DNA of 64,000 bases, from positions 178,065-242,064 of the IMG/VR virus record IMGVR_UViG_3300032116_014939. One strand, given 5' to 3'. Below the pieces are notes generated by a model that searched no databases, was not told where the DNA came from, and saw only the letters and a program-made list of their open reading frames with translations. Below, one piece after another: positions 44,564 through 63,449 of the stretch. Every line of letters begins with the position of its first letter. Position 1 is the stretch's first letter. The translations under genes were made by a program, and so were the position numbers.

Positions 44564-45901
44564 TTAATGGTAACTTATTTGGTCTTTTTTCTTTTTTTCA
44601 AAGTGACGTTTTGCGTCACTTTGTGTTTTTCTAACACACATTGAAACTGCGTCGTCACATGATTGAGTTTTTATTGAACCGTGTTTATTACCTCTTCTTT
44701 TTTTACGTCTACCTGAACCTCCGCCAGTTAAACTAAATTTCCATTTGTATAGCATTGCCCAATATTTTTGACTTGGGTTTGTTATTTTTTCAGGAGGAGT
44801 ACTATCTGGTAAAGTTACATCTCTATCACCTGGAGCGTCAACATCGTAAAATATTTGTATTTTTACTGTTGGTCTAACATATCTGTATTTTTCATATGCT
44901 TTAGCACCACCTTTATCCGCGGGTTCAGGAGTCCCAAATTCATTTCTTTTCTTTTCTAAAGTTGTTGCTTGTGGTGTATTGGGTGTGACAAAATTATTAA
45001 AATTGTAATCAACACCTTTAGGTAAAAAACTATATCCCTTAGGTGGATTTGGGCCAGATGTACCATCACCATTTTGACCTTTAGCATTTATAGTCGTATT
45101 ACGTTTACCTGTACACCACCCACCTTTTAAATTTTCATAATTTTTCATTAAAAAGTTTTCAACAGTTGCTGCTCTTGCTTCTGATAATTTTTCAAAACTT
45201 AAATCTTTGGCCTCACCTTGATTTCTAAATCGGCTAGCACTTGATTCTAAAGAAATACTTTGTATACATATTCCCGCATTAGGGTAAGTTTGTCTAAGAT
45301 TGTCTAACGCAGTCTTGTATGGTTCAACAAAAGTTTGATAAAATTCATTTTCGCCTGCCGGTTTTAATCTCCAACTATTATTATCAAAAAAATCTTGTTG
45401 TACAACTTCGGATGGAATTATAACCGTATCAAGTTCTGGTGGTGTCTCAGACTTATTTGGTAGTTTCTGTTTTGGTAATTTCTCAAGTTCAGAAAATGAT
45501 TGTCTTGTTCCTAATCTACAGTATTTATATCTATCTCGACCTTCAGAATTTTTTACTTTTTTAATAATATCCGCAGCGAAATACATGTCGTCAGTTTTTA
45601 TTTTTCCCCATAGGTCGATTTGGTCTTGACCCGTAAGAATATTTTTTACGTACCCATTTTGATTTTCTTGGTAAACTAATGATTGAGCTTCACGGTATAA
45701 ATCCATAAACTTTTCATTATCTTCAGTATTTTCACCTTTAGATTTAAATAACTCATACTTTTCTGAATAACCACCTTCACCTTGAGTTAATTTACTTGAT
45801 GACTGAGATATAAATCTTTTTCTATCAGGAGTTTGTTCGCTAATAACTTTCTGTATAATTGCAACTAAATCATTTTCAGTTAACCTAACTATTTTTTTCA
45901 T
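44564..45901 (-). CDS. leader-bearing protein with an OmpA-C-like domain
   Basis: Leader MKKIVRLTENDL...VISEQ; 'ISLESSAS...EKLSEARAATVENFL...RYV' pattern. Confidence 0.55.
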   Translation of the reverse strand: MKKIVRLTENDLVAIIQKVISEQTPDRKRFISQSSSKLTQGEGGYSEKYELFKSKGENTEDNEKFMDLYREAQSLVYQENQNGYVKNILTGQDQIDLWGKIKTDDMYFAADIIKKVKNSEGRDRYKYCRLGTRQSFSELEKLPKQKLPNKSETPPELDTVIIPSEVVQQDFFDNNSWRLKPAGENEFYQTFVEPYKTALDNLRQTYPNAGICIQSISLESSASRFRNQGEAKDLSFEKLSEARAATVENFLMKNYENLKGGWCTGKRNTTINAKGQNGDGTSGPNPPKGYSFLPKGVDYNFNNFVTPNTPQATTLEKKRNEFGTPEPADKGGAKAYEKYRYVRPTVKIQIFYDVDAPGDRDVTLPDSTPPEKITNPSQKYWAMLYKWKFSLTGGGSGRRKKRRGNKHGSIKTQSCDDAVSMCVRKTQSDAKRHFEKKKKDQISYH

Positions 45902-45970
45902 AAAAAAACTTTTTATATAAATAGATGAAATTTTAAAAAAAAGTATACTTATTGCTAAATAAATGAAATA

Positions 45971-46111
45971 ATGGCAGCTAAAACAACTAAATCATCTAAC
46001 TCAACGAAGGTTTCATTCGGAGTTAAGAAATCAGGTAAATCAACAAAGAAATTTACCGCAAATAAAAGAAGTAAGAATTACAAAAAACCTTACAGAGGTC
46101 AAGGGAGATAA
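45971..46111 (+). CDS. 46-aa highly basic peptide ending KKPYRGQGR (not in ORF track)
   Basis: MAAKTTKSSNSTKVSFGVKKSGKSTKKFTANKRSKNYKKPYRGQGR; no acidic residues; stop 2 nt before the next ATG. Confidence 0.8.
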   Translation: MAAKTTKSSNSTKVSFGVKKSGKSTKKFTANKRSKNYKKPYRGQGR

Positions 46112-46113
46112 AC

Positions 46114-46431
46114 ATGAAAGAATACATTAAAAAACAAATCGGAAACATTAAACAGTTTTCATTTGCCGAGATGACTTCCAATAGTTCAGGAAAGACATCA
46201 GGAAGTGGAACTGCGGGTCTTTACATCGTGTTTATCGGAGGTTTAACATTCTTTATGGGTTGTATCGATAAAATGTTTTTAAACAAAGATATTGACGTTA
46301 TAACACAATCAATAATCCTTGTTGGTATTGGAGCAACTCTTTTAGGTTATAGAAAATCAAAAGATAAAACAGAAGAACCTACGGTAGAAGAAGTACAAGA
46401 AACTACTGAAGAAAGTGAAACTATAAACTAG
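46114..46431 (+). CDS. two-TM membrane protein (holin-like topology)
   Basis: Two hydrophobic helices and a charged C-terminal tail. Confidence 0.6.
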   Translation: MKEYIKKQIGNIKQFSFAEMTSNSSGKTSGSGTAGLYIVFIGGLTFFMGCIDKMFLNKDIDVITQSIILVGIGATLLGYRKSKDKTEEPTVEEVQETTEESETIN

Positions 46432-47024
46432 TTCCACCATCTTTCAATATTTTCACTCAATACTTTGAAAAGTAATTTCCTTGCCCTTTCGTGATTGTAT
46501 CTTCCAATATTCAAGGCAATTCTTGATTTAACATCGTATGAAGTTAAATCCTCGTTGTCAATTTTAAAAATTTGATGTTTTTTGTTGGTAACAATTTTTT
46601 TGTAAACTAATGGGTATTTTTTGAAAAAATCATTTAAGTTTTCTTTTTTCAAACGGGTCTCCATATAATAACCACCTAAATCATCTTCGATATCATCACC
46701 TGTTGGAACAAAGAAAAAATCTTTATCTTCATAGTCCATATATTCCATAACATAAAATTCTTCCTGAACTTTTTCCATCAGTTTGACACATAACATCATT
46801 CTTTTAGCATCAAGGTCTGAATTAGTGTGAAATCCTTTTTCTTTAATGTACTTAGCTTGTTTTTCTAACTTAAACTTAAAAACCTCAAAAATATAATGGT
46901 CATCCCAATCCCTGTCTTTCCAAATGATAGGGAACCATTTAATTAAATTACCAACTGAGGTAAAAAAACCTCTTACCTTATAACCGATTTTAGACCAATA
47001 AAGTTCTTTTATTTTTTCAATCAT
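46428..47024 (-). CDS. hypothetical protein
   Basis: 198 aa; 'IKWFPIIWKDRDWD' motif. Confidence 0.75.
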   Translation of the reverse strand: MIEKIKELYWSKIGYKVRGFFTSVGNLIKWFPIIWKDRDWDDHYIFEVFKFKLEKQAKYIKEKGFHTNSDLDAKRMMLCVKLMEKVQEEFYVMEYMDYEDKDFFFVPTGDDIEDDLGGYYMETRLKKENLNDFFKKYPLVYKKIVTNKKHQIFKIDNEDLTSYDVKSRIALNIGRYNHERARKLLFKVLSENIERWWN

Positions 47025-47227
47025 AATTCAAGAATTGCCTTTTTACTAATTAAACTTTTCTTTAAGGAAACAATACTACATTCAAAGTCCAAAGAATATT
47101 GTGTTAATTCTTCAGAATTTTCATATTTTTTAACATAAAAATCAATCAGATTTTCGGCAGATTGAATTTGTCCAAAGTGGGTAATCGAACCAATTACCTT
47201 ACGTATCCATTGAAAGTCCCTATCCAT
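47021..47227 (-). CDS. hypothetical protein
   Basis: ATG at 47227, immediately downstream of a TATATTTG promoter element. Confidence 0.65.
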   Translation of the reverse strand: MDRDFQWIRKVIGSITHFGQIQSAENLIDFYVKKYENSEELTQYSLDFECSIVSLKKSLISKKAILEL

Positions 47228-47250
47228 AGGACAAATATACATAATCTTTC

Positions 47251-47634
47251 TTAATTATACAACAACGCAGTTAGTTGTGGATTACTTTTTTCGTACATAC
47301 GAATCATAATACCTGCTTCAGTATTAGCATAATTCTCTTGAGATTGGGTGTTAAACCCTTGTAACTTGATATTTCTTTGACGAGCAAACTCATGAACCCA
47401 CTCGTGAGCAACAGTTCTTAAAATGTCAATTAACATTCTTCCACCCGCAAGTACTTTAATTCTACCAGTGATTTCACTACCTGTGGTCATTTTACCAAAA
47501 CGTTCACCAAGAAGATGGATATCAACGTCTTTCTTAAGTGGAGAGTTTTTTTGACAAAATCTCAAAAAGTCCTGAATAACGTTTATTTCTTCAGAACCAA
47601 GCCCACTAGATTTATCATATAAATTTACTTTCAT
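47251..47634 (-). CDS. zincin-like (HExxH) protein
   Basis: 'LRTVAHEWVHE...ENYANTEAG'. Confidence 0.7.
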   Translation of the reverse strand: MKVNLYDKSSGLGSEEINVIQDFLRFCQKNSPLKKDVDIHLLGERFGKMTTGSEITGRIKVLAGGRMLIDILRTVAHEWVHEFARQRNIKLQGFNTQSQENYANTEAGIMIRMYEKSNPQLTALLYN

Positions 47635-47675
47635 CTTAACAATAAATATCTTATATTTCTTTTGTATATATAATT

Positions 47676-47945
47676 ATGAAAAAGAGTTTTTTTGAAAAAG
47701 TCCTAAACAAAACAAACAAAAAAGACATCGACCAATGGTTCGGTGAAAATTCTGAAATCAAAGTTACGGAATTTTCTCATTCAATTAGTCAGAAAAAAAA
47801 CATTTTATCAGTAAAATTATACCCATCAAATTATGAATACGCTATCGAACTTTTTCCGGAAGGCTTGGAAATTCTTGTCTTACATACTATCAAAAGTCTT
47901 TCACTTCCTGAGGATTATATATTAACAACATCTATAGAACACTAA
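47676..47945 (+). CDS. hypothetical protein
   Basis: 89-aa ORF. Confidence 0.7.
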   Translation: MKKSFFEKVLNKTNKKDIDQWFGENSEIKVTEFSHSISQKKNILSVKLYPSNYEYAIELFPEGLEILVLHTIKSLSLPEDYILTTSIEH

Positions 47946-47948
47946 ATT

Positions 47949-48302
47949 ATGGCACATCCAATAATCCATGCAAAATCATCCGTGAAAAAATTCGGAGGAA
48001 AATGGGAAGATTATATCCATTTACATGAATGGTTAGATGAAACAAAAGGTTGGTACGGACATTCATCTCACAGAATGTTTCGTCATCACTCTGAAGGTAT
48101 ATTTGAAATGGAACAACGTTTTGGTGCTGAATTTAAAAACAGTGATGGGAAAACTGTATACACCCGTTATGTCGGTGAACAACATGTTATGGAGGATTGT
48201 AACGGATATATCCCATCAGCAAAAGAATGGGTGTTAGCATTAGAAAATAAACAAAGACCTTTATGGATGATTAAAACCATGAAGTTAGAAATTGATGATT
48301 GA
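47949..48302 (+). CDS. DUF6915-like His-rich protein
   Basis: 'MAHPIIHAKSSVKKFGGKWEDYIHLHEWLDETK...RHHSEGIF...VGEQHVMED', recognised from memory of the family. Confidence 0.7.
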   Translation: MAHPIIHAKSSVKKFGGKWEDYIHLHEWLDETKGWYGHSSHRMFRHHSEGIFEMEQRFGAEFKNSDGKTVYTRYVGEQHVMEDCNGYIPSAKEWVLALENKQRPLWMIKTMKLEIDD

Positions 48303-48313
48303 TATTTATTATT

Positions 48314-49012
48314 ATGAAAGAATTATTAAATAACCCTGAAACTATAAAAAATTTTAAACTTTTACATTATATCCTATTAAGTAATGGTCTTACTCGTGTC
48401 AGTAATGACTTTTATGTTGATTACGACGGGAATGTTGATTATCACTTCTCACCTTGGACTAATAAAGGTGGAGCTTATGATATTATACCTAATAAATTAT
48501 TTGATTTTTTAGATAATTTTTTTGATTCTATTAAAGATGAAGTTTTAGATTCACTAGAAGGTGATGGTGACTCTAGAGCGACGGTATCATGTGAGTATTC
48601 AACAAGAGATAAAACTTTTACAATTGATGAAAGTATTCAAACTATGGGTTATGAATCATATTACCAAGAGTTTGAAATTGACGAAAAGGAATTACTTGAG
48701 GATATGGTTCAGTGGAAAGAAGATGGTAAACTTAAAATTAGAGTTGATTTTAGTGGTTCAGGTGATTCAGGTTATATTGATGACGTTGGTCTAATCAATG
48801 ATACTGATGACAAACATTATGAATTTACAGCGGTTTGGGAAAATAAGTTATACAACATTTTGGAGCAAAATCATGGTGGATGGGAAATAAATGAAGGTTC
48901 TGAGGGAACATTTATAATTAACAATGAAAACCAAACAATAGAATTAGATTTTCGTATGAATGTTGAACAATCTTCAACAGGTTACGAATTTAAACACCAA
49001 TTTGAGTTTTAA
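48314..49012 (+). CDS. DUF6878-like acidic protein
   Basis: 'VDFSGSGDSGYID...GGWEINEGSEGTF'; TATTTAT at 48303-48309. Confidence 0.65.
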   Translation: MKELLNNPETIKNFKLLHYILLSNGLTRVSNDFYVDYDGNVDYHFSPWTNKGGAYDIIPNKLFDFLDNFFDSIKDEVLDSLEGDGDSRATVSCEYSTRDKTFTIDESIQTMGYESYYQEFEIDEKELLEDMVQWKEDGKLKIRVDFSGSGDSGYIDDVGLINDTDDKHYEFTAVWENKLYNILEQNHGGWEINEGSEGTFIINNENQTIELDFRMNVEQSSTGYEFKHQFEF

Positions 49013-49326
49013 TAAACCTGAATAGTTCTTTGCGGTCTGTCATCACCAAAGTCAGGACAGAAATAAACATTGTTACCATCGTGGTAAATTGTTCCACCAA
49101 CTCCATTAGGAATTTTGTGTTTTTCATGGAATTTATCATCCAAATCTATTTGGTGATTTCCATCATGAATAACAAAACATAAGTTTTCAAAACCACACTT
49201 ATATTGTTGGTCTTTGTTTTTATGTTTCATAAACTCGTCAAAAGACATTACGTATCTTGCATCTTCGTTAAGGTATCTTTTAACTATAAATTCTAATTGA
49301 CTTTCTGTAATAATAAACTTTTTCAT
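49009..49326 (-). CDS. leader-bearing small protein
   Basis: MKKFIITESQLEFIVKRYLNE leader. Confidence 0.75.
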   Translation of the reverse strand: MKKFIITESQLEFIVKRYLNEDARYVMSFDEFMKHKNKDQQYKCGFENLCFVIHDGNHQIDLDDKFHEKHKIPNGVGGTIYHDGNNVYFCPDFGDDRPQRTIQVY

Positions 49327-49344
49327 ATACTATAAATATAAGGG

Positions 49345-51132
49345 TTAAGAATAAATTCCTTGACTATAAATTTTCCATTCTTTTTCTCTTCGGTCTCTAT
49401 GACTAAAATCTAAAAAGTTAATTTTAACTGAATTAGAATTTGGATTCATTTTTAAAGAAGTACTTAATTTTGGGGCCTTTGTTGTACAACCCGCAAATCC
49501 AACTTGATAACATAATGATGATAATGCATCAACTTGTTTTTGATTTAAATTAGGATATATTGCTAATAACTTACCTGCCAATTTATTTAAAGCAGTTTTT
49601 AAATACGTTTTAGCAATATCTTTTGTTATTGATGGGTCTTTAGGTGATACTTTTCTACCATCAGGGTAATAAACCGTACCATAACCAATTGTCGGGGTTC
49701 CAGATGGAACTCTACCTTTTAAACAACAATCAGATTCTCCTCTAATACATTTACCACCTTTAGCATCATCATAAACACAAGGAACAAAAAACTCAATATT
49801 ACCAACAAAATTTACAAGATTATCTGAAACACCTGTAGGTTTTTGATTGGTTTTCTCATTTTTTTTAGATATTTCACTTGAGGCTTTTTGAAGACCGGAT
49901 TTAATTGTTTTATTTATATCACTAACAACACCTCCCGAATCTGGTTTCATTTGGTCTTTTGGTTGACCCATAGAAGACCATTTATCCATAAAATTTGGTT
50001 CTTTATTTGATTGGTTAAAACCCATAGTTTTATTAATGTCATCAAAAACTGATTGCTCATTAATATTTGGTTTTAACACAGTCATTGCTTCAGGAAAATC
50101 CTTATTTAAAACATCCTCATCTTTATTTGTATAAGGAATATTCTGTAAAACATATCTAATTGAATTTAAACCTGAAATCTTTTTATCGTTAGAATCCAAA
50201 ACAACCCAAGGATGGTTTACAGTGGATGTTTTATCAAAAAGTTTTTGTTTATACTCTGTAAACTTTTCCCACACATCTTGCATTTTTTCATCATTCTCAG
50301 AATACTTCCAATATTTCAATGGTGACTTTTGTCTAAAATCAAATCTTTTAGCCTGAGTTTCTTTATCTATTGAGAACCAAAGTTTGAATAGATAATCACC
50401 GTCAATAACTAATGACTCCTCAAAGTCCTGAACATTATCCATAAAGTCTTCATATTCATCTGAAGAACCATAACCCATAACAGGTTCCACTAAACCTCTA
50501 TTATACCAACTTCTATCAAAGAAGTTTATCTTACCTTTCTCAATTTGATTTCTGTATCTATCCCACCAGTTCTTTCTTTCATCGGGTGTAGGAATACCAA
50601 GAGCAATAACTTTATAATATCTTGGATTTAAGTTTTCAGTAAACTTTTTAATTGTTGAACCTTTACCTGCAGAATCTCTTCCTTCAAAAACAATAATAAC
50701 AGTTTTACCTGTTTGTTTTAACCATTCCTGTAGTTTTAATAATTCAACCTGAAGGAAAAATAATTCTTTCTTATAAATGTCCTTATCTAATATTGATGGC
50801 TCTTCTTCAGGACTAACAACTTCTTTTTTAGTTTTTCTTTTTTCTAATGATTTAGTTAGTTGTTTGAAAAATTCAAAAATATTAATGTCTTTACTACCTT
50901 TTAATTTTAAAGTTTTTAAAATACCTCTTGTAACTAATCCAAAATCAACTAAGCCATCTTTTGAATATTCTTCAATCTTATTAATGAATTTTTGAATTTG
51001 AGCACTATATACTTTGTTATCTTTTAAAACCGCAACAAGAGATTTAACCTCAGGGCTATACTTTGGTTTGTCAGCTTCTGTCAAACCCATTATGTTTTTC
51101 ATCTTACTAACTTCAGTTAATAAATTCCTCAT
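49345..51132 (-). CDS. ppk2: polyphosphate kinase 2 fused to a C-terminal GH24 (phage-type) lysozyme
   Basis: PPK2 Walker A 'FEGRDSAGKGSTIK', Walker B 'FDRSWYNR', lid 'RQKSPLKYWK'; lysozyme 'IEFFVPCVYDD...TPTIGYG', 'LNQKQVDALSSLCYQVG', 'RREKE'. Confidence 0.88.
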   Translation of the reverse strand: MRNLLTEVSKMKNIMGLTEADKPKYSPEVKSLVAVLKDNKVYSAQIQKFINKIEEYSKDGLVDFGLVTRGILKTLKLKGSKDINIFEFFKQLTKSLEKRKTKKEVVSPEEEPSILDKDIYKKELFFLQVELLKLQEWLKQTGKTVIIVFEGRDSAGKGSTIKKFTENLNPRYYKVIALGIPTPDERKNWWDRYRNQIEKGKINFFDRSWYNRGLVEPVMGYGSSDEYEDFMDNVQDFEESLVIDGDYLFKLWFSIDKETQAKRFDFRQKSPLKYWKYSENDEKMQDVWEKFTEYKQKLFDKTSTVNHPWVVLDSNDKKISGLNSIRYVLQNIPYTNKDEDVLNKDFPEAMTVLKPNINEQSVFDDINKTMGFNQSNKEPNFMDKWSSMGQPKDQMKPDSGGVVSDINKTIKSGLQKASSEISKKNEKTNQKPTGVSDNLVNFVGNIEFFVPCVYDDAKGGKCIRGESDCCLKGRVPSGTPTIGYGTVYYPDGRKVSPKDPSITKDIAKTYLKTALNKLAGKLLAIYPNLNQKQVDALSSLCYQVGFAGCTTKAPKLSTSLKMNPNSNSVKINFLDFSHRDRREKEWKIYSQGIYS

Positions 51133-51168
51133 ACTGATAAATACTTTTTAATAAATATTTTGTTAATG

Positions 51169-51199
51169 TTGATTATTTTTAATAAAACGCATATATTTA
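51169..51199 (+). promoter_or_regulatory. host-type promoter for the leader-peptide/AsnRS-like unit
   Basis: TTG (51169-51171), 20 bp, TATATTTA (51192-51199); one mismatch to TAnnTTTG. Confidence 0.55.
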
Positions 51200-51205
51200 A
51201 TTTTA

Positions 51206-52865: not shown

Positions 52866-53441
52866 TTATCTTGGAGCACCTCTATATGATGCATTTGGTT
52901 TAATTGGTACTACATAATCAGGGGTTCCTTTATAAGTACAAAACGGTCTTGATGTAATTACTTTTGCTAAATCGTTATTTAGATAATCTTCTTTAATTCC
53001 ACCTTTTCTTTTGAAAGGTTCACCAATAGCACCTAATCCTTTTTCAAATGCCGAGTTACAATTCCATCTGAATTTAATAGGTTCACTATATCTTTTTTTA
53101 TCTCTATTTAAAAAAGTACCTGTATAACCCTCAACGTCCGAACCTGTAATATCTTGGACTGTAAATTCAACTGTTGGTAAATTATTAATCGTTGTTATTC
53201 CAACTTGTTTTATTTTATAGTTTTCAGAAGTTCTTTTACCTTTAAACATCCCACTTTCACCTGTATATTTGTTTAAACCATAAGCATTAAACATAAGAAC
53301 TTCAGAACCTGTAAGACCTGATACTTCCTTACGAAATTGTTCAGGTGTTTTTGCAGTTAAATCATCGTTTTCTTTTATAACTTTTTTAATTAAATTAATA
53401 AGTTCATTTTCTGTTAATCTAATAACTTTTTCTTTTTTCAT
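52866..53441 (-). CDS. leader-bearing hypothetical protein
   Basis: MKKEKVIRLTENELINLIKKVIKEN leader. Confidence 0.75.
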   Translation of the reverse strand: MKKEKVIRLTENELINLIKKVIKENDDLTAKTPEQFRKEVSGLTGSEVLMFNAYGLNKYTGESGMFKGKRTSENYKIKQVGITTINNLPTVEFTVQDITGSDVEGYTGTFLNRDKKRYSEPIKFRWNCNSAFEKGLGAIGEPFKRKGGIKEDYLNNDLAKVITSRPFCTYKGTPDYVVPIKPNASYRGAPR

Positions 53442-54714: not shown

Positions 54715-55062
54715 TTACCAATCAATTCCAGGCCCAAATTCCCTTTCATCAATAATATCGTTTATATATAATTCAATATTGGGTAACAAATCTTCTATCC
54801 TATATTGAATTTCCGCCCTGATATTATCAAAATCACTTCTATTTTGTGACTTGTAGATATCAACGTAAACTTTTATTTTATCTGATAGTGTGATATAATT
54901 AATTTTAATCTTATCAATAGATTGAACTTCGTGTAATTCATCCATCTCACCCATTCCCCATTCTTCAGATTCTTCCCTTAAACTATCTAATTTAGAATTT
55001 ATCAATCCCTGAATTAAATTTTTTGTTTTTTCTAATTGTTTTTGGTCTATGATATATTTCAT
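54715..55062 (-). CDS. MKYII-leader protein
   Basis: 115 aa; TATTTAT upstream. Confidence 0.7.
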   Translation of the reverse strand: MKYIIDQKQLEKTKNLIQGLINSKLDSLREESEEWGMGEMDELHEVQSIDKIKINYITLSDKIKVYVDIYKSQNRSDFDNIRAEIQYRIEDLLPNIELYINDIIDEREFGPGIDW

Positions 55063-55114: not shown

Positions 55115-55573
55115 TTACTTCAAGTTAGTATTGTCTTCGACAAAATTATCCACTTTATCTTTAAAAATCATATATGCCAAAGTTTGAACTCCAATAGCAG
55201 TTAAAAACTTTGGTATGTCTTTTTTAAATTCATTAGCTTGTTGTTTTAAACTTCTTTTTACTTTTTTAAGTAATTTTTTTAACCATTTAGGATTGGTTTG
55301 TTTCAATTCCAAAAAGTAAGCTTTAACTTCATCTTTATCTTTACCAACTAAAGAATTAATTGCGTTATCAATATTATCTTCAGGAGCGGTTTCCATCTTA
55401 GCTTCAAAACTTTTTTTATCAAGAGTTGATTCTGTAATATATGGTTTAACATCACCTGATTTTGTTTCAATCAATTTTTTAAAATTTTCAATAACAATTT
55501 TTTTACCACCTTCGTGTTGTTCACGAATTGAGTTTTTTACTTCTTCCGATAAATCGTTTAATAAATGTTTCAT
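55115..55573 (-). CDS. leader-bearing hypothetical protein
   Basis: 'MKHLLNDLSEEVKNSIREQH...YITES' resembles the N-terminus of the 40342-40803 protein. Confidence 0.7.
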   Translation of the reverse strand: MKHLLNDLSEEVKNSIREQHEGGKKIVIENFKKLIETKSGDVKPYITESTLDKKSFEAKMETAPEDNIDNAINSLVGKDKDEVKAYFLELKQTNPKWLKKLLKKVKRSLKQQANEFKKDIPKFLTAIGVQTLAYMIFKDKVDNFVEDNTNLK

Positions 55574-56299: not shown

Positions 56300-56302
56300 G
56301 TA

Positions 56303-56812: not shown

Positions 56813-56876
56813 ATAAGATAAATACATTATAAAACAAAAAACCCCACTCAGATGAATGGGGGTTTAAAAATTACTC

Positions 56877-57377: not shown

Positions 57378-57410
57378 AGAACAAATATACAAAAAGTTTT
57401 TGATAAAACA

Positions 57411-57719
57411 CTAAAACTGCATGTTAATTCTCTTAATCTCTATTCCAAACTTATCCGTATAATATTTCTCAATACCTTCACCTACCGAATTTCCAAATAA
57501 AACACGCATCTTTTCAAAAAAAGAATAATCAATCCATAATGTTCCATTAAGATTTCTGTGGGCAATTCTTACAGGGTGACCATCACTATCAATATCTTTC
57601 CTACTAAAGAAATGAATATACCCATCCTCATCAACAGCCATTTCAACATCACCATAGGTGGCGTCCATGTACTTCTTAATAACCTCATTTAACTTACTCT
57701 CGGTGATAATATATTTCAT
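57411..57719 (-). CDS. MKYIITES-leader protein
   Basis: 102-aa ORF. Confidence 0.75.
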   Translation of the reverse strand: MKYIITESKLNEVIKKYMDATYGDVEMAVDEDGYIHFFSRKDIDSDGHPVRIAHRNLNGTLWIDYSFFEKMRVLFGNSVGEGIEKYYTDKFGIEIKRINMQF

Positions 57720-57735
57720 ATTACAATAAATACCT
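57699..57735 (-). repeat. 37-bp promoter+leader repeat, copy 1
   Basis: CTCGGTGATAATATATTTCATATTACAATAAATACCT, identical at 60291-60327. Confidence 0.92.
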
Positions 57736-58271
57736 CAAAGTAAAAAACGGTGGAAGTTGGATACCCGTAAAGGAAATATATTATTTCCCTTTGTTCGATT
57801 ATCATCTTTCCATAAAGGTCTCAAGTTTTTATAATAACATGATTTTTTAACCCATTCTTCAGATTTATACAAAGATACTGGAATAATATGGTCATATTCC
57901 CATTCACCACGATTACCCCAAGTCATACCTTCTAAAAATCTTGATTCAATATAAGGTATAAACAATTCAACGGAAATACCAAGATATTCGGACAAAAAAC
58001 TATTTTTTTTATAACCTCTTTTACTGTTAATACTTCTAACTAAAGACCTTAAACTCTGAGTTGTACCATGAATAGGATTTTCTTTTTCTCGTCTACGTTT
58101 TCTCTTAACATCATACGCATTCAACTCCTTATGATATTCAGGGTCATTCTTTCTACGTTCCATCTTTTGAATATACCTACGTTTGTTATCACATAGTTTA
58201 CACTTCTTTCGGTTATCTCTAAAATCGGAAACGGGCTTACTAATATTACAACAATTACAAATACGTTCCAT
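57735..58271 (-). CDS. HNH homing endonuclease-like protein
   Basis: N-terminal CxxC pair; 'GMTWGNRGEWEYDHIIPVS...NLRPLWKDDNRTKGN'. Confidence 0.85.
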   Translation of the reverse strand: MERICNCCNISKPVSDFRDNRKKCKLCDNKRRYIQKMERRKNDPEYHKELNAYDVKRKRRREKENPIHGTTQSLRSLVRSINSKRGYKKNSFLSEYLGISVELFIPYIESRFLEGMTWGNRGEWEYDHIIPVSLYKSEEWVKKSCYYKNLRPLWKDDNRTKGNNIFPLRVSNFHRFLL

Positions 58272-58276
58272 ATTTT

Positions 58277-59116
58277 TTATACTCCTCTCATTTCTTTTAA
58301 AAATTTATTATATCTATCAATATTTGATTCGTTAATTTTATTTGATTTACTAGCATTTTCATCTTTCCACAAAGGTTGCAGATTAGTGTGATGATTTAAA
58401 TATATTTTTTCTTCAAATGTATTTCCACAACTAATGGGAACAATATGGTCAAAACACCATTCACTACGATTGTCCCATGACATACCCTCCTTGAATAAAC
58501 TTTCAAAATACTTTAATCCGCTACTATAATCAATTCCAAGAATTTCTTCAGGAGAAAATTTACTTCTATATTCAGGGAATCCTGATAAAGAATATGAAAG
58601 TATTGAACCAATACTTTGTTTATATTTAAACAGTGGCGCTTTATCGTAATCCAATTTATCACTTTTACACCTGTTAGCAATAGTAAAAAGAGGTCGGATA
58701 TTAGTATAATGAGAGTTTTTTTCATAACTCTCTTGATTTTCAGATTTACTTAAAGGAAATATATGGTCAACTTCCCAATCACCATAATTATCCCACGACA
58801 TACCATCAACAAATTGTTTCTCCAAATGTTCTTTTAACATAATGGCATCACATCCAATAATATCTTCGTAAGTTTTTCCTTCAGGTTTAGAATAACCACG
58901 TCTTTTAAATTCATTTTTTAGTCGAGATTTTAATGACAATAAAATTTTATAATGTATTTCAAGTGACTTTCGGTTCTTTCTAATCTCAACCCTAGATTTT
59001 TTAGCACATTCTTTACATTTAGAAGACACTTTATTTTTAGCAAAATAATATTCTGACCTAGGTTTGCTTTCCTTACATACATAACAAACTTTTAATTCAT
59101 CCAATCTATGACCCAT
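58277..59116 (-). CDS. HNH homing endonuclease-like protein with two HNH domains
   Basis: 'GMSWDNYGDWEVDHIFPLS...NIRPLFTIANRCKSD' and 'GMSWDNRSEWCFDHIVPIS...NLQPLWKDENASKSN'. Confidence 0.85.
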   Translation of the reverse strand: MGHRLDELKVCYVCKESKPRSEYYFAKNKVSSKCKECAKKSRVEIRKNRKSLEIHYKILLSLKSRLKNEFKRRGYSKPEGKTYEDIIGCDAIMLKEHLEKQFVDGMSWDNYGDWEVDHIFPLSKSENQESYEKNSHYTNIRPLFTIANRCKSDKLDYDKAPLFKYKQSIGSILSYSLSGFPEYRSKFSPEEILGIDYSSGLKYFESLFKEGMSWDNRSEWCFDHIVPISCGNTFEEKIYLNHHTNLQPLWKDENASKSNKINESNIDRYNKFLKEMRGV

Positions 59117-59168
59117 AAACCAAATATAACGAAAAATGGGGTATTGGAAATGTGAGAAATAAAAAAAA

Positions 59169-59552
59169 TTATATTTCTTTTATAAATTGACCAACACCTA
59201 CACTACGAAAACCTTTACTTCTTAATTTGTTTTTAACTCTAACCGCATCTTCTCTTTCAAAACCAGCATCGGCAAAATCTAAAGGTGCCCCCACATCAAC
59301 TATAACGTATCTACTAGTAATACCAAATTTAACACAATCAGTATCAATATATTGTCTTAAATAATTACGGATTTCGTCATAAAAATTATTAGATATGGTT
59401 TTATTATTAGAATCAACGTCATCATTAGGTGTTGGGTTATTTTTGGGGACAATACGTTTGGCTGGACGTTTTTTTTCAGCTTCTGATAATTTAACAACCC
59501 TTTTAATCAATCTTGTTAAATCAGATTCAGTTAATCTTACAATTTTTTTCAT
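59169..59552 (-). CDS. leader-bearing protein (paralog of 59558-59929)
   Basis: MKKIVRLTESDL leader; shared 'DVGAPLDF.D.GF...K.KLR..GF.S.GVGQ' domain. Confidence 0.8.
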   Translation of the reverse strand: MKKIVRLTESDLTRLIKRVVKLSEAEKKRPAKRIVPKNNPTPNDDVDSNNKTISNNFYDEIRNYLRQYIDTDCVKFGITSRYVIVDVGAPLDFADAGFEREDAVRVKNKLRSKGFRSVGVGQFIKEI

Positions 59553-59557
59553 ATTAA

Positions 59558-59929
59558 TTAAAATTCGCTTGTTCTAACTTTTTTCGCATATTGACCTACA
59601 CCCCAACTATTAAAACCATGTTTTCTTAATTTATCTTTAGCTTTGTTTGCCTCACTTCTTGAAAATCCACAATCTTCAAAATCTAATGGAGCCCCAACAT
59701 CAAATACCAAATAATCTGCTAAATACTTATATGTAATACAACCCGCTTTAAGATACGGTTCCATAGCGTTAAACACCGGTTGTGTTTCAATATCTTTATC
59801 TGATGGTTTAGAATTAAATCCACTATAAAATGTGTCTTTTATCTTATCTTCCCAACTATCATTTTCTTTGATGACTTTCTTAACTATTTTAACCAAATCA
59901 GACTCGGTTAATCTTATAACTTTTTTCAT
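59558..59929 (-). CDS. leader-bearing protein (paralog of 59169-59552)
   Basis: MKKVIRLTESDLVKIVKKVIKEN leader; same C-terminal domain. Confidence 0.8.
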   Translation of the reverse strand: MKKVIRLTESDLVKIVKKVIKENDSWEDKIKDTFYSGFNSKPSDKDIETQPVFNAMEPYLKAGCITYKYLADYLVFDVGAPLDFEDCGFSRSEANKAKDKLRKHGFNSWGVGQYAKKVRTSEF

Positions 59930-59960
59930 AATAATATTTTATTATAAATACCACAAAATT

Positions 59961-59997
59961 AAAAAGGGGGTAGGGGGATTGGAACAACGGGAAAAAA
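59961..59997. repeat. G-rich intergenic repeat, copy 1
   Basis: AAAAAGGGGGTAGGGGGATTGGAACAACGGGAAAAAA. Confidence 0.9.
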
Positions 59998-59999
59998 TT

Positions 60000-60311
60000 T
60001 TATACAAAAATAACATCCCACACCGCAGTAGAATCTCCGTTTTTGTCTTTAGGAAATAATAATGTAAACATGGTTCCAATCTTTTCTTCAATATCTGAAC
60101 CCTCGTCATAAGCATGATAACTACGACCACCTGTATTTAGTATAATTTGATATACAGGATATGTCTCATTTCTAAATTTCCAATTTTTTGTTTTTATCTC
60201 AACATCACCATTAAACCATTCGTATTCAGATAATAAGTTCTCAACATAATCCTTTAAGAAATTAACTTTCCTCATTTGTAAATTCTGAGACTCGGTGATA
60301 ATATATTTCAT
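60000..60311 (-). CDS. MKYIITES-leader protein
   Basis: 103-aa ORF. Confidence 0.75.
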   Translation of the reverse strand: MKYIITESQNLQMRKVNFLKDYVENLLSEYEWFNGDVEIKTKNWKFRNETYPVYQIILNTGGRSYHAYDEGSDIEEKIGTMFTLLFPKDKNGDSTAVWDVIFV

Positions 60312-60327
60312 ATTACAATAAATACCT
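60291..60327 (-). repeat. 37-bp promoter+leader repeat, copy 2
   Basis: Identical to 57699-57735. Confidence 0.92.
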
Positions 60328-60383
60328 TAAAAATAAAAAACCCCTCACATCGGAGGGGTTGTATAATTTAATATTGTTTTACA

Positions 60384-60764
60384 TCACCAACGTTTGGGAT
60401 TAAACCATCCAAGATGTCTGCCGGTTTCCTTAAAGCTTTGACGATTATCATCATCTTCCTCATCTTCTTTACCAAGAAGAACATAATTCAAATCGTCAAG
60501 AACTGTATACTTATCAACCTCCTCATCATTAACATTCAAAAAAATATCACGTCCAAGATATTTCACCAACGGGGTACCTCCTTCAACATACTCATTGTAT
60601 AACTCAATAATACTCTGTGGTGAAGATGTTTCACCAACTTTATTTCTAACACCCTTAAATCCAGCAGATATGAAAATATCCTTTTCTTCATGTCTATTTT
60701 CCTTAACAACTCTTTTAACTATTTTAACCAAATCTGATTCAGTTAATGTTATAACTTTTTTCAT
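60384..60764 (-). CDS. leader-bearing protein
   Basis: MKKVITLTESDLVKIVKRVVKEN leader. Confidence 0.78.
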   Translation of the reverse strand: MKKVITLTESDLVKIVKRVVKENRHEEKDIFISAGFKGVRNKVGETSSPQSIIELYNEYVEGGTPLVKYLGRDIFLNVNDEEVDKYTVLDDLNYVLLGKEDEEDDDNRQSFKETGRHLGWFNPKRW

Positions 60765-60796
60765 ATTAATATTTTATAATAAATACACCCCAAAAC

Positions 60797-60837
60797 AAAA
60801 AAGGGGGTAGGGGGGAATTGGGACAACGGAAAAAAAA
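60797..60837. repeat. G-rich intergenic repeat, copy 2
   Basis: AAAAAAGGGGGTAGGGGGGAATTGGGACAACGGAAAAAAAA. Confidence 0.9.
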
Positions 60838-61140
60838 TTATTTTTTCTTGTCTGTACGTTTAACTTCAACGTTATTAATAAAAACCTTTGTCGGGGGATT
60901 ATTTCTTGTCGATTCAAAATATTCATCAAAGGCGGTCCAGAACATATTTGGTTCTAAATTATATGTATTTAACATTTCGTTACCATGTATTGACAATCGA
61001 CTAACATCTTCAGAGTTGTAATATCTTTTTATTCTTTCTTTAAGAGCATCCATCTTCTGTTTCGGATATGTTTGCTCCGCAATAACTCGTTTAATTATAC
61101 GAGTCAAATCTGATTCTGTAAGTCTAATTATCTTTTTCAT
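60838..61140 (-). CDS. leader-bearing protein
   Basis: MKKIIRLTESDLTRIIKRVIAEQ leader. Confidence 0.78.
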   Translation of the reverse strand: MKKIIRLTESDLTRIIKRVIAEQTYPKQKMDALKERIKRYYNSEDVSRLSIHGNEMLNTYNLEPNMFWTAFDEYFESTRNNPPTKVFINNVEVKRTDKKK

Positions 61141-61175
61141 ATGTAATAAATATAACAGAAATAAAAAAGGGGAAA

Positions 61176-61751
61176 TTAAGGTTTAACCAAATAGATTTTA
61201 TTTTCATCGTAATTCTTAACCAAGACAGTCTCTTGTTTAAATTCTTGAGCAAGTTCTTCAGCAACCTTATTTAATACGTCAGAAGTAATTCCAACGATTT
61301 CAACAGATAATGAACTCTCATCATACAACGAACCATCTTTGGCTTTATATCGACCCTTAACAAAATTTCCAATGGTCACACCAAATATTTCAGGGTTGTT
61401 TTTAATCACCTTATTTATTTTACTTGATTTAAACAAAATATTTGTTGCGGTTTCAAGTTTGTTTTTAATAAAACGAACCAACTTGTTTTTAGATAATTCA
61501 ACAGCATTAACATTAACAGAAAAAACAATTACCCCACCTTTATCTTCAAACTCAAAATCAATTTCTTCAGTAAGTTCAGATTCAACATTTGGTTGTATAT
61601 AAAATGTTTGAGCATCAGGGTCGTTGTCTATATTAATAGAAAACCCATTTAATTTTAATCCTTCCATTAAACTACTCGCACCAATCTGCTCGTAAGTCTT
61701 TTTTGACGAATCAAAGTTCTTAACTTTATCAATAAATTTTCTAATATCCAT
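61176..61751 (-). CDS. putative SAM lyase (T3 SAMase-like fold)
   Basis: 'KGRYK...DESSLSVEIV...VAEELAQEFKQETVLV' parallels T3 SAMase 'TGCYRE...EEKTVRV...VARLACNEWEQDCVLV' (alignment from memory). Confidence 0.5.
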   Translation of the reverse strand: MDIRKFIDKVKNFDSSKKTYEQIGASSLMEGLKLNGFSINIDNDPDAQTFYIQPNVESELTEEIDFEFEDKGGVIVFSVNVNAVELSKNKLVRFIKNKLETATNILFKSSKINKVIKNNPEIFGVTIGNFVKGRYKAKDGSLYDESSLSVEIVGITSDVLNKVAEELAQEFKQETVLVKNYDENKIYLVKP

Positions 61752-61792
61752 ATACTTGATTTTTAAATAAATATAAACTAAAGATACAAAAT

Positions 61793-61833
61793 AAAAAAGG
61801 GGGGTAGGGGGGATTGGAACAACGGAAAAAAAA
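61793..61833. repeat. G-rich intergenic repeat, copy 3
   Basis: AAAAAAGGGGGGTAGGGGGGATTGGAACAACGGAAAAAAAA. Confidence 0.9.
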
Positions 61834-61838
61834 TATTT

Positions 61839-62300
61839 TTATAATTTACCAACAAGTTCATCCAATCCCTCAATGATAATCCCACACTCAGAATAAAACT
61901 CGTAGTTACACTTACCCGTGTTCTTAGCTCTAAGAGTAACCAATGAATGTTCCTTGTCAGTCAAAGAAATGGTGGACGCATATTTCTTACATAATAAAAC
62001 AAAATCATCAACACCAATAGTAGGATTCTTACTTAACTCATCCATGATATATCCCATGGCAATCTTTCTCGGAACATAGTGGTCATGAACAATCTTACCA
62101 CCACCCTTAACTCCATTAGATGATAAACCCGTATGCCAAAACTTAGTGTTAGTTAAATCAAACAAAGGGTTGCGGTTCCTAGATAAAAACATATCATATA
62201 ATACATCATTATCCTTAACTTCCAAATACCTCGGAACAAGACAAAGAAAATCCTTCAATGTCTCCTCAACCTTAACCAATTGTTTATTTGTAAGTTTCAT
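61839..62300 (-). CDS. hypothetical protein
   Basis: 153 aa; 'VHDHYVPRK' may be a degenerate HNH-like motif; TATATTTG upstream. Confidence 0.7.
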   Translation of the reverse strand: MKLTNKQLVKVEETLKDFLCLVPRYLEVKDNDVLYDMFLSRNRNPLFDLTNTKFWHTGLSSNGVKGGGKIVHDHYVPRKIAMGYIMDELSKNPTIGVDDFVLLCKKYASTISLTDKEHSLVTLRAKNTGKCNYEFYSECGIIIEGLDELVGKL

Positions 62301-62321
62301 AATACAAATATAAGAAAAAAA

Positions 62322-62825
62322 TTATTTTTTCCCAAAGATATTCATAAACTCTTTCTCGTAATCACGTCTCTCAACCTTAACGGTGTTTACATGAAACTTA
62401 ACAAACTTAACGTCAGTATATATCATAGGAAATGACATGTTGATTTTATCACCCAACTTCTCAGGAGATAATACATCACTTGTATCCCAATTGTATCTAA
62501 CATCAACATATACCAAATACGTTGGGGTGGATTCTAAACTATCAACAAAAGCATATGAATATTTAGTTTCAATCTTATTAACAGTAATTGAATGAATACC
62601 AGGTAAACTCTTCTTAAGAACCTTGAATAACATCTCAGGAAAAACAAATTCACCATCCTTATTATACATTCTGTTGCACGTTGAAGGGATACCATAATCA
62701 TTATCAACATACGGGTTAACAGTTATTCCTCCATTAGTTACACGATATTCACCGTAATCTCTTGTTAACAAAAAATTATCTCCTAAAATATTCATCATAC
62801 CAATATTTTCTTCTTCAGGTTCCAT
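62322..62825 (-). CDS. hypothetical protein
   Basis: 167 aa; TATCTTTG upstream. Confidence 0.7.
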   Translation of the reverse strand: MEPEEENIGMMNILGDNFLLTRDYGEYRVTNGGITVNPYVDNDYGIPSTCNRMYNKDGEFVFPEMLFKVLKKSLPGIHSITVNKIETKYSYAFVDSLESTPTYLVYVDVRYNWDTSDVLSPEKLGDKINMSFPMIYTDVKFVKFHVNTVKVERRDYEKEFMNIFGKK

Positions 62826-62874
62826 ATATATTTTTTTTACAAAGATAAAACAATAATACTAATTTACCAAAAAA

Positions 62875-63123
62875 TTATTTAACATCAGAAAATGAATCCA
62901 CATTAATAAACTCAGATTCCAAATGACCAATGATATCCCTAAGAGTCTGACCCTGTAACTCAGGGGTTTCCCTACTACGAATAGATAATGAAATAGCCCC
63001 ACACAATACAGATATAATATCATTAATATTCATACCCTTCTTGGCCATTATGTCATAAAAAAATTTATTGTCCCTTAATGTTACATCCACAGTAACTGAT
63101 AATTTTTCTTCTTCCATTTCCAT
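62875..63123 (-). CDS. hypothetical protein
   Basis: 82-aa ORF. Confidence 0.65.
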   Translation of the reverse strand: MEMEEEKLSVTVDVTLRDNKFFYDIMAKKGMNINDIISVLCGAISLSIRSRETPELQGQTLRDIIGHLESEFINVDSFSDVK

Positions 63124-63206
63124 ATATCAATAATAAGAAAAAAAATGAAATAAAAAACCCCTCCGTTAAAGGAAGGGTCAGTCCAACAATACTATCATTG
63201 GAGAGG

Positions 63207-63449
63207 TTAATAATCTTCAGTACCCATAAATGCTTCGTCCCCAATATCACCTATAGTATCAATAATATCAGTTAAAACTCTTACGACACCTTCCGTTCCG
63301 TATGTTTTATAAACAGGTTGTAAAATATCCATAATTTGGACATGTACTGACTCAGTATCATCATGAAATGAATCTTCATCTCTTTCTTCATTAATAACCC
63401 TTTTAATTATATTGGTTAATTCTTTTTCTGTTAATCTAATCTTTTTCAT
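63207..63449 (-). CDS. leader-bearing small acidic protein
   Basis: MKKIRLTEKELTNIIKRVINEE leader; ATG at 63449. Confidence 0.78.
   Translation of the reverse strand: MKKIRLTEKELTNIIKRVINEERDEDSFHDDTESVHVQIMDILQPVYKTYGTEGVVRVLTDIIDTIGDIGDEAFMGTEDY

Follow-up and report, generated by a model that had tools for sequence, protein, structure and literature searches.

In phage T4, the internal proteins IPI, IPII and IPIII carry a 10-residue N-terminal capsid targeting sequence (CTS) that targets them to the core of the assembling head and is removed by the prohead protease gp21, which cuts after L/I-x-E (PMC9026906; PMC3012670). T-even internal proteins are described as diverse defence proteins that share only the CTS (PMC3012670; PMC9026906). 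In the phiKZ-like giant phages (phiKZ, 201phi2-1, SPN3US), heads hold dozens of processed ejection or inner-body proteins that are cut after Glu by a gp21-related protease (gp175/gp245) at an S/A-x-E motif, and the propeptides carry redundant cut sites (PMC9026906). In encapsulins, a short conserved peptide on diverse cargo directs loading into an HK97-fold shell. At the DNA level, PeSL cassettes of T4-type phages are small conserved, non-coding terminator and early-promoter units that flank variable ORFs in plastic regions and act as points of recombination (PMC4122927). Here, we examined a leader shared by many unrelated small proteins of an uncultured freshwater jumbo phage and compared it with these systems.

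The window analysed is a 64,000-nucleotide stretch (positions 178,065 to 242,064 of IMG/VR record IMGVR_UViG_3300032116_014939) and is the last 64 kb of this 242-kb phage. A preliminary description made from the sequence alone had proposed that two types of N-terminal leader start many otherwise mostly unrelated ORFs here and that most of these genes have TATTTAT upstream. We found that this observation holds at every start that had been listed. Eight ORFs, plus a variant at 8604, begin with MKK(I/V)(I/V)RLTE(S)DLxx(I/L)(I/V)K(R/K)V(I/V)xE (leader A), and five begin with MKY(I/L)I(T/K)ES (type B), one of them only as a weak variant (Table 1). A degenerate DNA pattern for leader A gave 7 matches in the window compared to 0 in 100 shuffles. 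When the first 25 residues were removed, the 14 proteins shared no BLASTP similarity (E>1) with the exception of the adjacent pair starting at 59552 and 59929 (E=5e-21). The window also encodes a T4-type head, with matches to Peptidase_S77 (PF03420, E=1e-26), Gp23 (PF07068, E=7e-73) and Portal_T4 (PF07230, E=5e-75). The protease aligns with T4 gp21 by BLASTP (E=2e-27) and keeps the N-terminal LLIE/ILIE, and the capsid propeptide ends SFLINE↓A (the arrow marks the cut), next to SFLTE↓A of T4 in the alignment.

Table 1. Positions (within the window), strands and characteristics of the leader-bearing ORFs and of the head and accessory genes.
Position	Strand	Feature	Length (aa)	N-terminus	Observations
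44564..45901	-	Leader-A protein	445	MKKIVRLTENDLVAIIQKVISEQ	Weak sub-threshold OmpA-like hit in the cargo; [LI]xE at residues 9 and 22, only one more in the remaining 422 aa
52431..52847	-	Leader-A protein	138	MKKVVRLSESELTNLIKTVVKET	Hydrophobic segment; second gene of a two-gene unit
52866..53441	-	Leader-A protein	191	MKKEKVIRLTENELINLIKKVIKEN	Leader has a two-residue insertion (MKKEKVIRLTE...)
59169..59552	-	Leader-A protein	127	MKKIVRLTESDLTRLIKRVVKLSE	Cargo paralogous to that of 59558-59929
59558..59929	-	Leader-A protein	123	MKKVIRLTESDLVKIVKKVIKEN	AF2 model: leader helix 9-22 (pLDDT 55-62), low-confidence linker 26-37, well-folded domain 50-120 (pLDDT ~90) with no known fold match
60384..60764	-	Leader-A protein	126	MKKVITLTESDLVKIVKRVVKEN	
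60838..61140	-	Leader-A protein	100	MKKIIRLTESDLTRIIKRVIAEQ	
63207..63449	-	Leader-A protein	80	MKKIRLTEKELTNIIKRVINEE	Length from the ATG at 63449; leader one residue shorter (MKKIRLTEKEL)
8604..9122	+	Distant leader-A variant	172	MKKIKLKENEYIKLLKFVLSEA	Directly after a 501-aa gene of unknown function (7102-8607); DUF6576 hit at residues 29-58
9124..9579	+	Protein with a truncated leader		MKNLDNLIKQVLKEQ	Matching ORF in relative L063 (same position after the homolog of the 7102-8607 gene; shared ...RYMFFSNLEQM... seen by eye) carries the full leader A
42225..42845	+	Type-B start	206	MKYLIKESQ	Hydrophobic segments
49009..49326	-	Type-B start	105	MKKFIITESQ (MKKFIITESQLEFIVKRYLNE)	Shares only residues 3-31 with the B-family profile
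57411..57719	-	Type-B protein	102	MKYIITES	Member of a ~100-aa paralogous family; AF2 mean pLDDT 87.5, helix 7-22 is part of the fold and only residues 1-6 lie outside it
60000..60311	-	Type-B start	103	MKYIITESQ	Shares only the first 10 residues with the B-family profile; promoter plus first 7 codons 92% identical to those of 57719
54715..55062	-	Weak type-B variant	115	MKYIIDQKQ	
49345..51132	-	PPK2 + phage-lysozyme fusion		MRNLLTEVSKMKNIMGLTE	Third kind of N-terminus; LTE at residues 7 and 19
15228..15947	-	Prohead protease, Peptidase_S77			34% identical to T4 gp21
11590..13440	-	gp23-type major capsid protein			Five [LI]xE sites in the first 60 residues; likely maturation cut at FLINE↓AAS
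13472..14890	-	Acidic scaffold-like protein			Between the protease and the capsid gene; TATTTAT upstream; no Pfam, PHROG or NCBIfam match; assigned by gene order and composition
16686..17396	-	Putative prohead core protein			12 [LI]xE sites (5.6 expected); no significant family match; assigned by position and site density
17421..19268	-	gp20-type portal protein			
26419..28482	+	ClpA/ClpB-type AAA+ ATPase lacking the N-domain			Conserved in relatives; possible accessory, role unknown

To determine where conservation lies, we compared leader A at the DNA and protein levels. The leader DNA is only 62-85% identical between genes, with synonymous codon changes at invariant residues (L7 TTA/TTG/CTT; V19 GTT/GTA/GTC), indicating that conservation is at the protein level. 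In 126 long leader proteins the only invariant columns are E9 and E22, each within an (L/I/V)-x-E motif. We then examined 125 leaders that were selected only on residues 1-12. In these, E22 is present in 115 and position 22 is never Asp. Eight of the ten exceptions are a longer variant ending in a hydrophobic-L-x-E (ILxE, VLxE or ALxE) at residues 23-26. Of the 125, 124 have an [LIV]xE at residues 18-26, only one lacks any, and conservation collapses at residue 23. The residue after E22 is variable (Q, S, N or E) rather than the Ala that follows the T4 sites examined (MKTYQEFIAE↓A, ...STITE↓A, MLKEQLIAE↓A and MEGLIE↓A). A minority of proteins carry a second, internal leader without a Met. Because the strand-helix pattern resembles a ribbon-helix-helix DNA-binding domain, we also considered this identity, but such a domain has an N-terminal strand followed by two conserved helices, whereas conservation here ends after the first helix and there was no Pfam hit on the leader.

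If substrates are exposed to the protease, their mature parts are expected to avoid the cleavage motif. In 192 non-redundant cargo clusters obtained from 299 leader-A proteins, [LI]xE occurs 232 times compared to 355 for [LI]xD (E share 0.395 against a base of 0.491, p=3e-6). Compared with the other ORFs that lack an N-terminal [LI]xE, the odds ratio is 0.62 (Fisher p=1e-7). In the first set, the deficit appears only at offset +2 and only after L/I, not after V, FYW or AGS, and the bootstrap 95% interval of the deficit is -0.129 to -0.046. The depletion is partial, at about 0.8-0.85 of the shuffle expectation in the non-redundant set. A second set with K at position 6 gave the same E share, 0.397 (p=0.016). 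By contrast, type B (88 against 85) and other ORFs with an N-terminal [LI]xE show no avoidance.

We next examined the distribution and context of the leader genes. A profile search with the leader, which had been suggested in advance as a check, matched 8,704 protein clusters at E<=1e-3, almost always from residue 1 and mostly at residues 1-27. The DNA pattern hit more than 117 IMG/VR contigs, but only two small MAG contigs among 185,579 cellular genomes. Of the 126 long leader proteins, 120 have no Pfam hit at E<=0.001. TATTTAT lies 11-35 nt upstream of the ATG (counted from the first base of the motif) for 11 of the 13 leader genes in 42-64 kb, and the other two are second genes of two-gene units. 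Only 59929 of these 13 has a TAnnTTTG match, which overlaps its TATTTAT. TATTTAT is not specific to leader genes because 32 of 88 genes have it, including those for the scaffold, protease, a core protein and the terminase, as well as many non-head genes. It is a general promoter-like motif of the phage, not a mark of leader genes, and it has not been shown to be a late promoter. In the relatives L110 and L050, leader genes lie between the protease and scaffold genes.

The preliminary description interpreted the leader as part of a portable promoter-plus-leader cassette that loads an expandable set of proteins, for example anti-defence or takeover factors, into the head for injection. Our data partly support this. 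For leader A, several independent computational lines support the core idea: the window encodes an S77 protease, E9 and E22 are invariant and lie in (L/I/V)-x-E motifs, the cargo specifically avoids (L/I)-x-E, leader genes share a promoter-like motif with the head genes and lie inside the head modules of relatives, and the leader is virus-specific. The promoter-plus-leader cassette is also visible as DNA, in the segments shared between genes with unrelated cargo. We consider it more likely than not, with moderate confidence, that leader A is a portable, cleavable head-targeting propeptide. In this view, leader genes would be transcribed from the same TATTTAT-type promoters as the head-assembly genes and the N-terminal strand-plus-amphipathic-helix would bind the scaffolding core of the assembling T4-type prohead. 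The S77 protease would then cut after E9 (R-L-T-E↓S) and/or E22 ((I/V)-x-E↓), freeing a cargo domain that has itself evolved to lack (L/I)-x-E sites, and the cargo would stay in the head and enter the host with the DNA. What the analysis demonstrates is the conservation of the motif in the leader, its avoidance in the cargo and the identity of the cassettes, whereas transcription from shared promoters, core binding, cleavage, retention and entry into the host, and the recruitment of new ORFs by recombination of short terminator-promoter-leader cassettes, are inferences. Presence in virions, packaging, cleavage, injection, any anti-defence role and whether the leader is sufficient to package a foreign protein were not examined experimentally, and we found no virion proteome, no cultured relative and no RNA run that contains the stretch; absence from purified virions and early expression without cleavage had been named as outcomes that would count against this interpretation. 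Some leader proteins also have hydrophobic segments that look membrane-spanning, and more than eight different cargo genes in 20 kb, with thousands of families overall, exceeds any head cargo described in the papers we consulted. The interpretation does not extend to type B, which lacks the avoidance signature and is partly an ordinary paralogous family.

An alternative, which we regard as unlikely but which survives best, is that the leader is a general docking or oligomerisation peptide that binds a common partner other than the prohead, such as the ClpA/B-type unfoldase of the phage or a host hub protein, with the tagged proteins acting in the cytoplasm. The leader is a short amphipathic helix detached from the cargo in the AF2 model, internal copies remain fully conserved, which suits a binding module, and the ClpA/B-type gene is conserved in the same phages, with several leader loci holding it. 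However, this does not explain why the two invariant residues are Glu in (L/I/V)-x-E and never Asp, why the cargo avoids exactly (L/I)-x-E at that spacing, or why leader genes sit inside head modules. It is also doubtful that these are ordinary paralogous families in which the N-terminus is simply the slowest-evolving part and has no targeting role. This is true in part for type B. The 57719 family aligns over about 100 aa at 26-32% identity, 203 type-B proteins from all loci collapse to 47 cargo clusters, and a strict-pattern set of 117 collapses to 21; 59552 and 59929 are also true paralogues. By contrast, leader-A cargo remains divided into many unrelated clusters, lengths range from 70 to over 560 aa, Pfam finds different domains or none, and conservation stops abruptly at residue 23. 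Even within type B, 60311 and 49326 share only 10-29 residues with the family profile.

About equally doubtful is the possibility that the conserved unit is a DNA or RNA cassette (terminator, promoter, first codons) serving recombination or translation start, with the peptide as a passenger without a function of its own. Cassettes spanning promoter and leader are shared between genes with unrelated cargo (92% identity over 49 nt and 81% over 110 nt), and terminator-like hairpins are enriched (24 against 8.4 expected) and lie just upstream of several promoter motifs. However, the peptide is far more conserved than its DNA, substitutions are conservative (I/V, K/R), the peptide is conserved across phages whose capsid proteins are only 55-75% identical, and the motif avoidance in the cargo is a protein-level signal. 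Export or membrane insertion at the cell envelope is very unlikely even though it would fit the lysozyme, the PG_binding_1 protein that carries leader A in a relative, the weak OmpA-like hits and the hydrophobic segments, because by eye (no signal-peptide predictor was run) the leader is charged and amphipathic with no hydrophobic core or signal-peptidase site, unlike a Sec or Tat signal peptide, most cargo is soluble and often acidic, and envelope-acting domains are equally expected for proteins ejected from a capsid.

A more far-reaching possibility, which is tentative and less likely than not, is that an uncultured clade of freshwater jumbo phages, probably infecting Bacteroidota, uses one universal address tag to load a very large, fast-turning-over arsenal of effector proteins into the capsid. 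This arsenal would span thousands of unrelated families and include polyprotein-like chains with internal tags that the head protease cuts apart, and the conserved ClpA/B-type unfoldase may take part in loading. If so, the tag alone would identify injected proteins in metagenomes. If the propeptide reading holds, a 22-residue motif flags by sequence alone which proteins of uncultured phages travel inside the capsid and reach the host first, a class that in T4 can include anti-restriction and host-takeover factors, as shown by IPI and Alt. The 8,704 clusters, of which nearly all sampled members lack any family match, would become a defined candidate set for counter-defence screening, and the leader would offer a natural packaging tag for phages with AT-rich genomes (27-37% G+C), probably of Bacteroidota hosts. 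It would also show that the T4 CTS principle is older, and used on a much larger scale, than T-even phages suggest. The motif-avoidance test is a general way to detect substrates of a capsid protease from sequence.

Compared with the known systems, the leader differs from the phiKZ-like propeptides in that its sites have L/I/V at P3 and the S/A-x-E motif is not that of the leader, with no avoidance of [AGS]xE in the cargo; in addition, the capsid is T4-like by sequence and the review consulted describes no shared portable leader for those proteins (PMC9026906). Encapsulin cargo-loading peptides are usually C-terminal, are not removed by a protease and belong to cellular nanocompartments. As in PeSL cassettes, hairpin, TATTTAT and first codons are shared between unrelated genes, but recombination events themselves were not traced, so that these similarities leave it undecided whether this is a shuffling cassette of that type; here the conserved unit extends into a peptide that is under protein-level selection. 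The closest resemblance is to the T4 CTS, with a short N-terminal leader starting MK and ending in the protease motif, carried by otherwise unrelated, fast-evolving proteins of a phage with gp23, gp20 and gp21 homologues. However, leader A is 22 residues long with two candidate cut sites and a helix, occurs on at least 8 genes in 20 kb, and has internal copies, whereas no T4 CTS covered here is internal. There is no sequence similarity to MKTYQEFIAE beyond MK... and ...(L/I)xE. It is therefore an analogue of the T4 CTS, not a member by descent.

The window has about 30% G+C, is the last 64 kb of a 242-kb IMG/VR contig, and occurs in many lake and freshwater metagenomes. It encodes a T4-type head module on the minus strand, comprising a gp23-type capsid protein, an acidic scaffold-like protein, a Peptidase_S77 prohead protease, a putative core protein, a gp20-type portal, and a large terminase. 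The scaffold and core assignments rest on gene order, composition, and site density, because no family matched these two proteins. By capsid protein, the nearest annotated relatives are an uncultured 484-kb phage, a Microcystis phage, and Flavobacterium phage immuto, at 41-46% identity.

Coordinates of features in the window and in loci of relatives (L001, L004, L030, and L063)
Coordinates	Strand	Feature
8604		Start of the leader-A variant
9124-9579	+	ORF after p7102 with only the second half of the leader
11590-13440	-	gp23-type capsid protein
13472-14890	-	Acidic scaffold-like protein
15228-15947	-	Peptidase_S77 prohead protease
16686-17396	-	Putative core protein
17421-19268	-	gp20-type portal
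19430-21175	-	Large terminase
22538-23464	-	308-aa head-module protein
23819-25075		Large protein with an N-terminal motif similar to that of the PPK2-lysozyme fusion
26419-28482	+	ClpA/ClpB-type double AAA+ ATPase without the N-domain
34397-36142	-	581-aa protein with N-terminal glycine-containing repeats
36156-37634		Large protein with an N-terminal motif similar to that of the PPK2-lysozyme fusion
40342-40803		Protein with a further shared N-terminal motif
49345-51132	-	Polyphosphate kinase 2-phage lysozyme fusion
55115-55573		Protein with a further shared N-terminal motif
57720-57747		Example of a promoter-like region
59125-59178		54-nt intergenic repeat
59558-59929		Leader-A protein with AF2 model
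59952-60005		54-nt intergenic repeat
60312-60339		Example of a promoter-like region
60791-60844		54-nt intergenic repeat
61787-61840		54-nt intergenic repeat
9638, 33908, 44020, 57377, 59116, 62300		Clean TAnnTTTG-class sites
L001:1421-1915		Protein with a further shared N-terminal motif
L001:4902		GDVKP(L/Y)I(S/T)E motif
L001:8046-8870		Protein with a further shared N-terminal motif
L004:11550		GDVKP(L/Y)I(S/T)E motif
L004:17988-18674		Lysozyme alone, with the N-terminus of the PPK2-lysozyme fusion
L030:9089-10591		Protein with a further shared N-terminal motif
L063:2562-3050		ORF after the p7102 homolog, with the full leader A

The preliminary description reported that many unrelated proteins share an N-terminal leader, and this observation holds. 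Eight ORFs at the stated starts, plus a variant at 8604, begin with leader A and five begin with the type-B start. A degenerate DNA pattern for leader A matched 7 times in the window compared with 0 in 100 shuffles. The leader DNA is only 62-85% identical and codons vary at invariant residues, so selection acts on the peptide; this synonymous variation led us to reject a translation ramp or conservation of the DNA alone. Without their first 25 residues the 14 proteins are unrelated, except for the adjacent pair 59552/59929.

To determine how far the leader reaches, we first examined close homologues of one leader protein and found that they keep the leader while the rest diverges or is replaced. 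A profile search of the leader had been suggested at the outset as a check, and our 30-column profile found 8,704 clusters at E<=1e-3 among 1.84 billion representatives, with the match almost always at residues 1-27. The DNA pattern hit more than 117 IMG/VR contigs of 27-37% G+C, whereas among 185,579 cellular genomes it hit only two 3-kb MAG contigs. No cultured phage was found to carry it: tblastn or blastn searches with a leader protein, the 25-aa leader, and the leader DNA against 50,697 phage records gave nothing real, and a hit to a Riemerella phage proved to be chance. The first 50 kb of Flavobacterium phage immuto, one of the nearest cultured relatives by capsid protein, has no leader; the rest of that genome was not scanned. 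Pfam, PHROGs, and NCBIfam have no family for the leader or for most cargo, and of 126 long leader proteins only 6 have any Pfam hit at E<=0.001. Full-text literature searches for the motif strings, and for a prior description in jumbo or huge phages, found nothing. A minority of proteins carry a second, internal copy of the leader. The public metagenome proteins P0010, P0022, P0024, P0028, P0029, P0037, P0043, P0065, and P0142 have two or three copies of leader A, where the internal copy keeps KK..RLTESDL but lacks the Met, as if tandem leader genes had fused into polyprotein-like chains.

We next examined the anatomy of the leader. In 125 leaders chosen only on residues 1-12, positions 13-22 are still conserved (L/I 15, V/I 16, K/R 17-18, V/I 19, I/L/V 20). 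E22 is present in 115 of these and is never Asp, and eight of the ten exceptions are a longer variant that ends in a hydrophobic-L-x-E (ILxE, VLxE, or ALxE) at residues 23-26. From residue 23 on, the sequence is essentially unconstrained. Across the 126 long proteins the only invariant columns are E9 and E22, both of which lie in (L/I/V)-x-E. The AF2 model of the 59558-59929 protein shows a helix at 9-22 of modest confidence, a low-confidence linker, and a confident separate domain with no known fold. We considered a ribbon-helix-helix reading of this strand-helix pattern, but rejected it because the second helix is missing. The two AF2 models, of leader-A cargo and of the type-B family, gave no significant match in PDB, and the leader-A model gave none in AFDB clusters. 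BFVD matched only uncharacterised proteins of uncultured phages and the ESM Atlas gave only unnamed viral clusters.

If leader proteins meet the prohead protease, their mature parts should avoid its cleavage motif, and we used this prediction as an independent test. In the first non-redundant set (175 clusters, 23.7k aa), Glu two residues after L/I is under-represented relative to Asp, with 206 against 301, which is an E share of 0.406 against a base of 0.493 (p=1e-4). No other offset from -5 to +5 deviates, and neither does V, FYW, or AGS at that position. As a comparison, other ORFs of the same loci gave 0.525. Against size-matched controls the Fisher p was 3e-6, and the bootstrap 95% interval of the deficit was -0.129 to -0.046. 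A second set with K at position 6 gave 0.397 (p=0.016). Over all 340 loci (192 cargo clusters) the count was 232 against 355 (p=3e-6), with an odds ratio of 0.62 (p=1e-7) against ORFs without an N-terminal site. By contrast, neither type B (88 against 85) nor other ORFs with an N-terminal [LI]xE (756 against 755) showed any signal. In the window, 33 of 88 genes, including those for the capsid, scaffold-like, and core proteins, have an [LI]xE whose Glu is residue 6-11, against 8.5 expected. Control motifs are at expectation, and the scanned part of Flavobacterium phage immuto shows no such excess (7 against 6.0). Apart from leader A, this class shows no motif avoidance downstream, so its meaning is open.

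There are two promoter-like classes in the window. TATTTAT lies 11-35 nt upstream of the ATG (counted from the first base of the motif) for 32 of 88 genes, including 11 of 13 leader genes and the scaffold, protease, core, and terminase genes. The gap from the end of TATTTAT to the ATG is bimodal, 4-7 nt or 12-21 nt, and the short class would give leaderless or nearly leaderless mRNAs. Eight genes instead have a match upstream to TAnnTTTG, which is the Bacteroidota -7 box; six of these are clean TATATTTG sites, and only one of the eight is a leader gene, where the match overlaps its TATTTAT. Sigma-70 promoters are not enriched, with 94 found against 110 expected, and none of the listed RNA runs contained the stretch. 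Terminator-like hairpins are enriched, and promoter-plus-leader cassettes are 81-92% identical between genes with unrelated cargo, which recalls PeSL cassettes (PMC4122927). A 54-nt intergenic repeat is present in four copies (61-85% identical to the reference copy) and is C-rich on the coding (minus) strand (...CCGTTGTTCCAATCCCCCCTACCCCC...). In three of the four copies it lies upstream of a TATTTAT motif; no function is known for it.

In relatives, whose loci were read over at most 15 kb each, leader genes lie inside the head module. The order is protease, 381-aa leader protein, and scaffold at locus L110, and two leader genes occur at the same place at locus L050. The ClpA/ClpB-type ATPase is 59-72% identical in many relatives and is found in several loci that also hold leader genes or head-module genes. 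The tag itself can differ between ORFs in the same position. The ORFs after p7102 (the gene at 7102-8607) and after its homolog at locus L063 share ...RYMFFSNLEQM... by eye, but the relative has the full leader A whereas the copy in the window keeps only the second half (MKNLDNLIKQVLKEQ), an apparent case of leader decay or loss. By eye, the 308-aa head-module protein holds two copies of the stretch TKEKERTKEKEKTTTPTRKNPFKPAPDTEPRPKG, and the 581-aa protein starts with GPGGSG / GSGDKGKGPG repeats.

There seem to be several tag families rather than two. The polyphosphate kinase 2 domain of the fusion protein is joined to a phage-lysozyme domain behind the N-terminus MRNLLTEVSKMKNIMGLTE. A relative has the same N-terminus on the lysozyme alone, so PPK2 looks inserted between leader and lysozyme. 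A similar N-terminal motif (xRIQEIMGI, KIQRIMEI) starts two large proteins of the window. Further motifs shared at the N-termini of different proteins are (I/L)TE(S/E)E(K/R)xxIxxL(H/Y) and GDVKP(L/Y)I(S/T)E. With respect to type B, the 57719 protein belongs to a real ~100-aa family that occurs in tandem arrays in relatives. Its helix 7-22 is part of a confident predicted fold and only MKYIIT lies outside it. The proteins at 60311, 49326, and 55062 share only 10-29 N-terminal residues with the profile of that family. A 7-residue MKYIITE|S tag would fit a T4-like CTS, but nothing tested here supports it.

Together, these data support, with moderate confidence, the idea that leader A is most likely a cleavable head-targeting propeptide on a very large, varied cargo set. 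The preliminary description had proposed that the leader loads proteins into the head for injection, for example as anti-defence or takeover factors, and we find this interpretation partly supported. What the analysis shows is the conservation of the peptide, its cut-site motifs, the avoidance of the motif in cargo, and the gene context, whereas packaging, cleavage, ejection, and any anti-defence role are inferred and were not assayed here. In T4, gp21 cuts after L/I-x-E, Asp at P1 blocks processing, and the 10-residue N-terminal CTS of the internal proteins gives them affinity for the core and is then removed; T-even internal proteins are described as diverse defence proteins that share only the CTS (PMC3012670; PMC9026906). 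The N-termini of T4 read MKTYQEFIAE|A (IPII, IPIII), ...STITE|A (IPI), MLKEQLIAE|A (gp22), and MEGLIE|A (gp67). The protease in the window is 34% identical to gp21, and its N-terminal ILIE aligns with LLIE of T4. The capsid propeptide has five [LI]xE sites in 60 residues and ends SFLINE|A, next to SFLTE|A of T4 in the alignment, and the putative core protein has 12 sites against 5.6 expected. In this view leader A would work like the T4 CTS, but it is not homologous to it.
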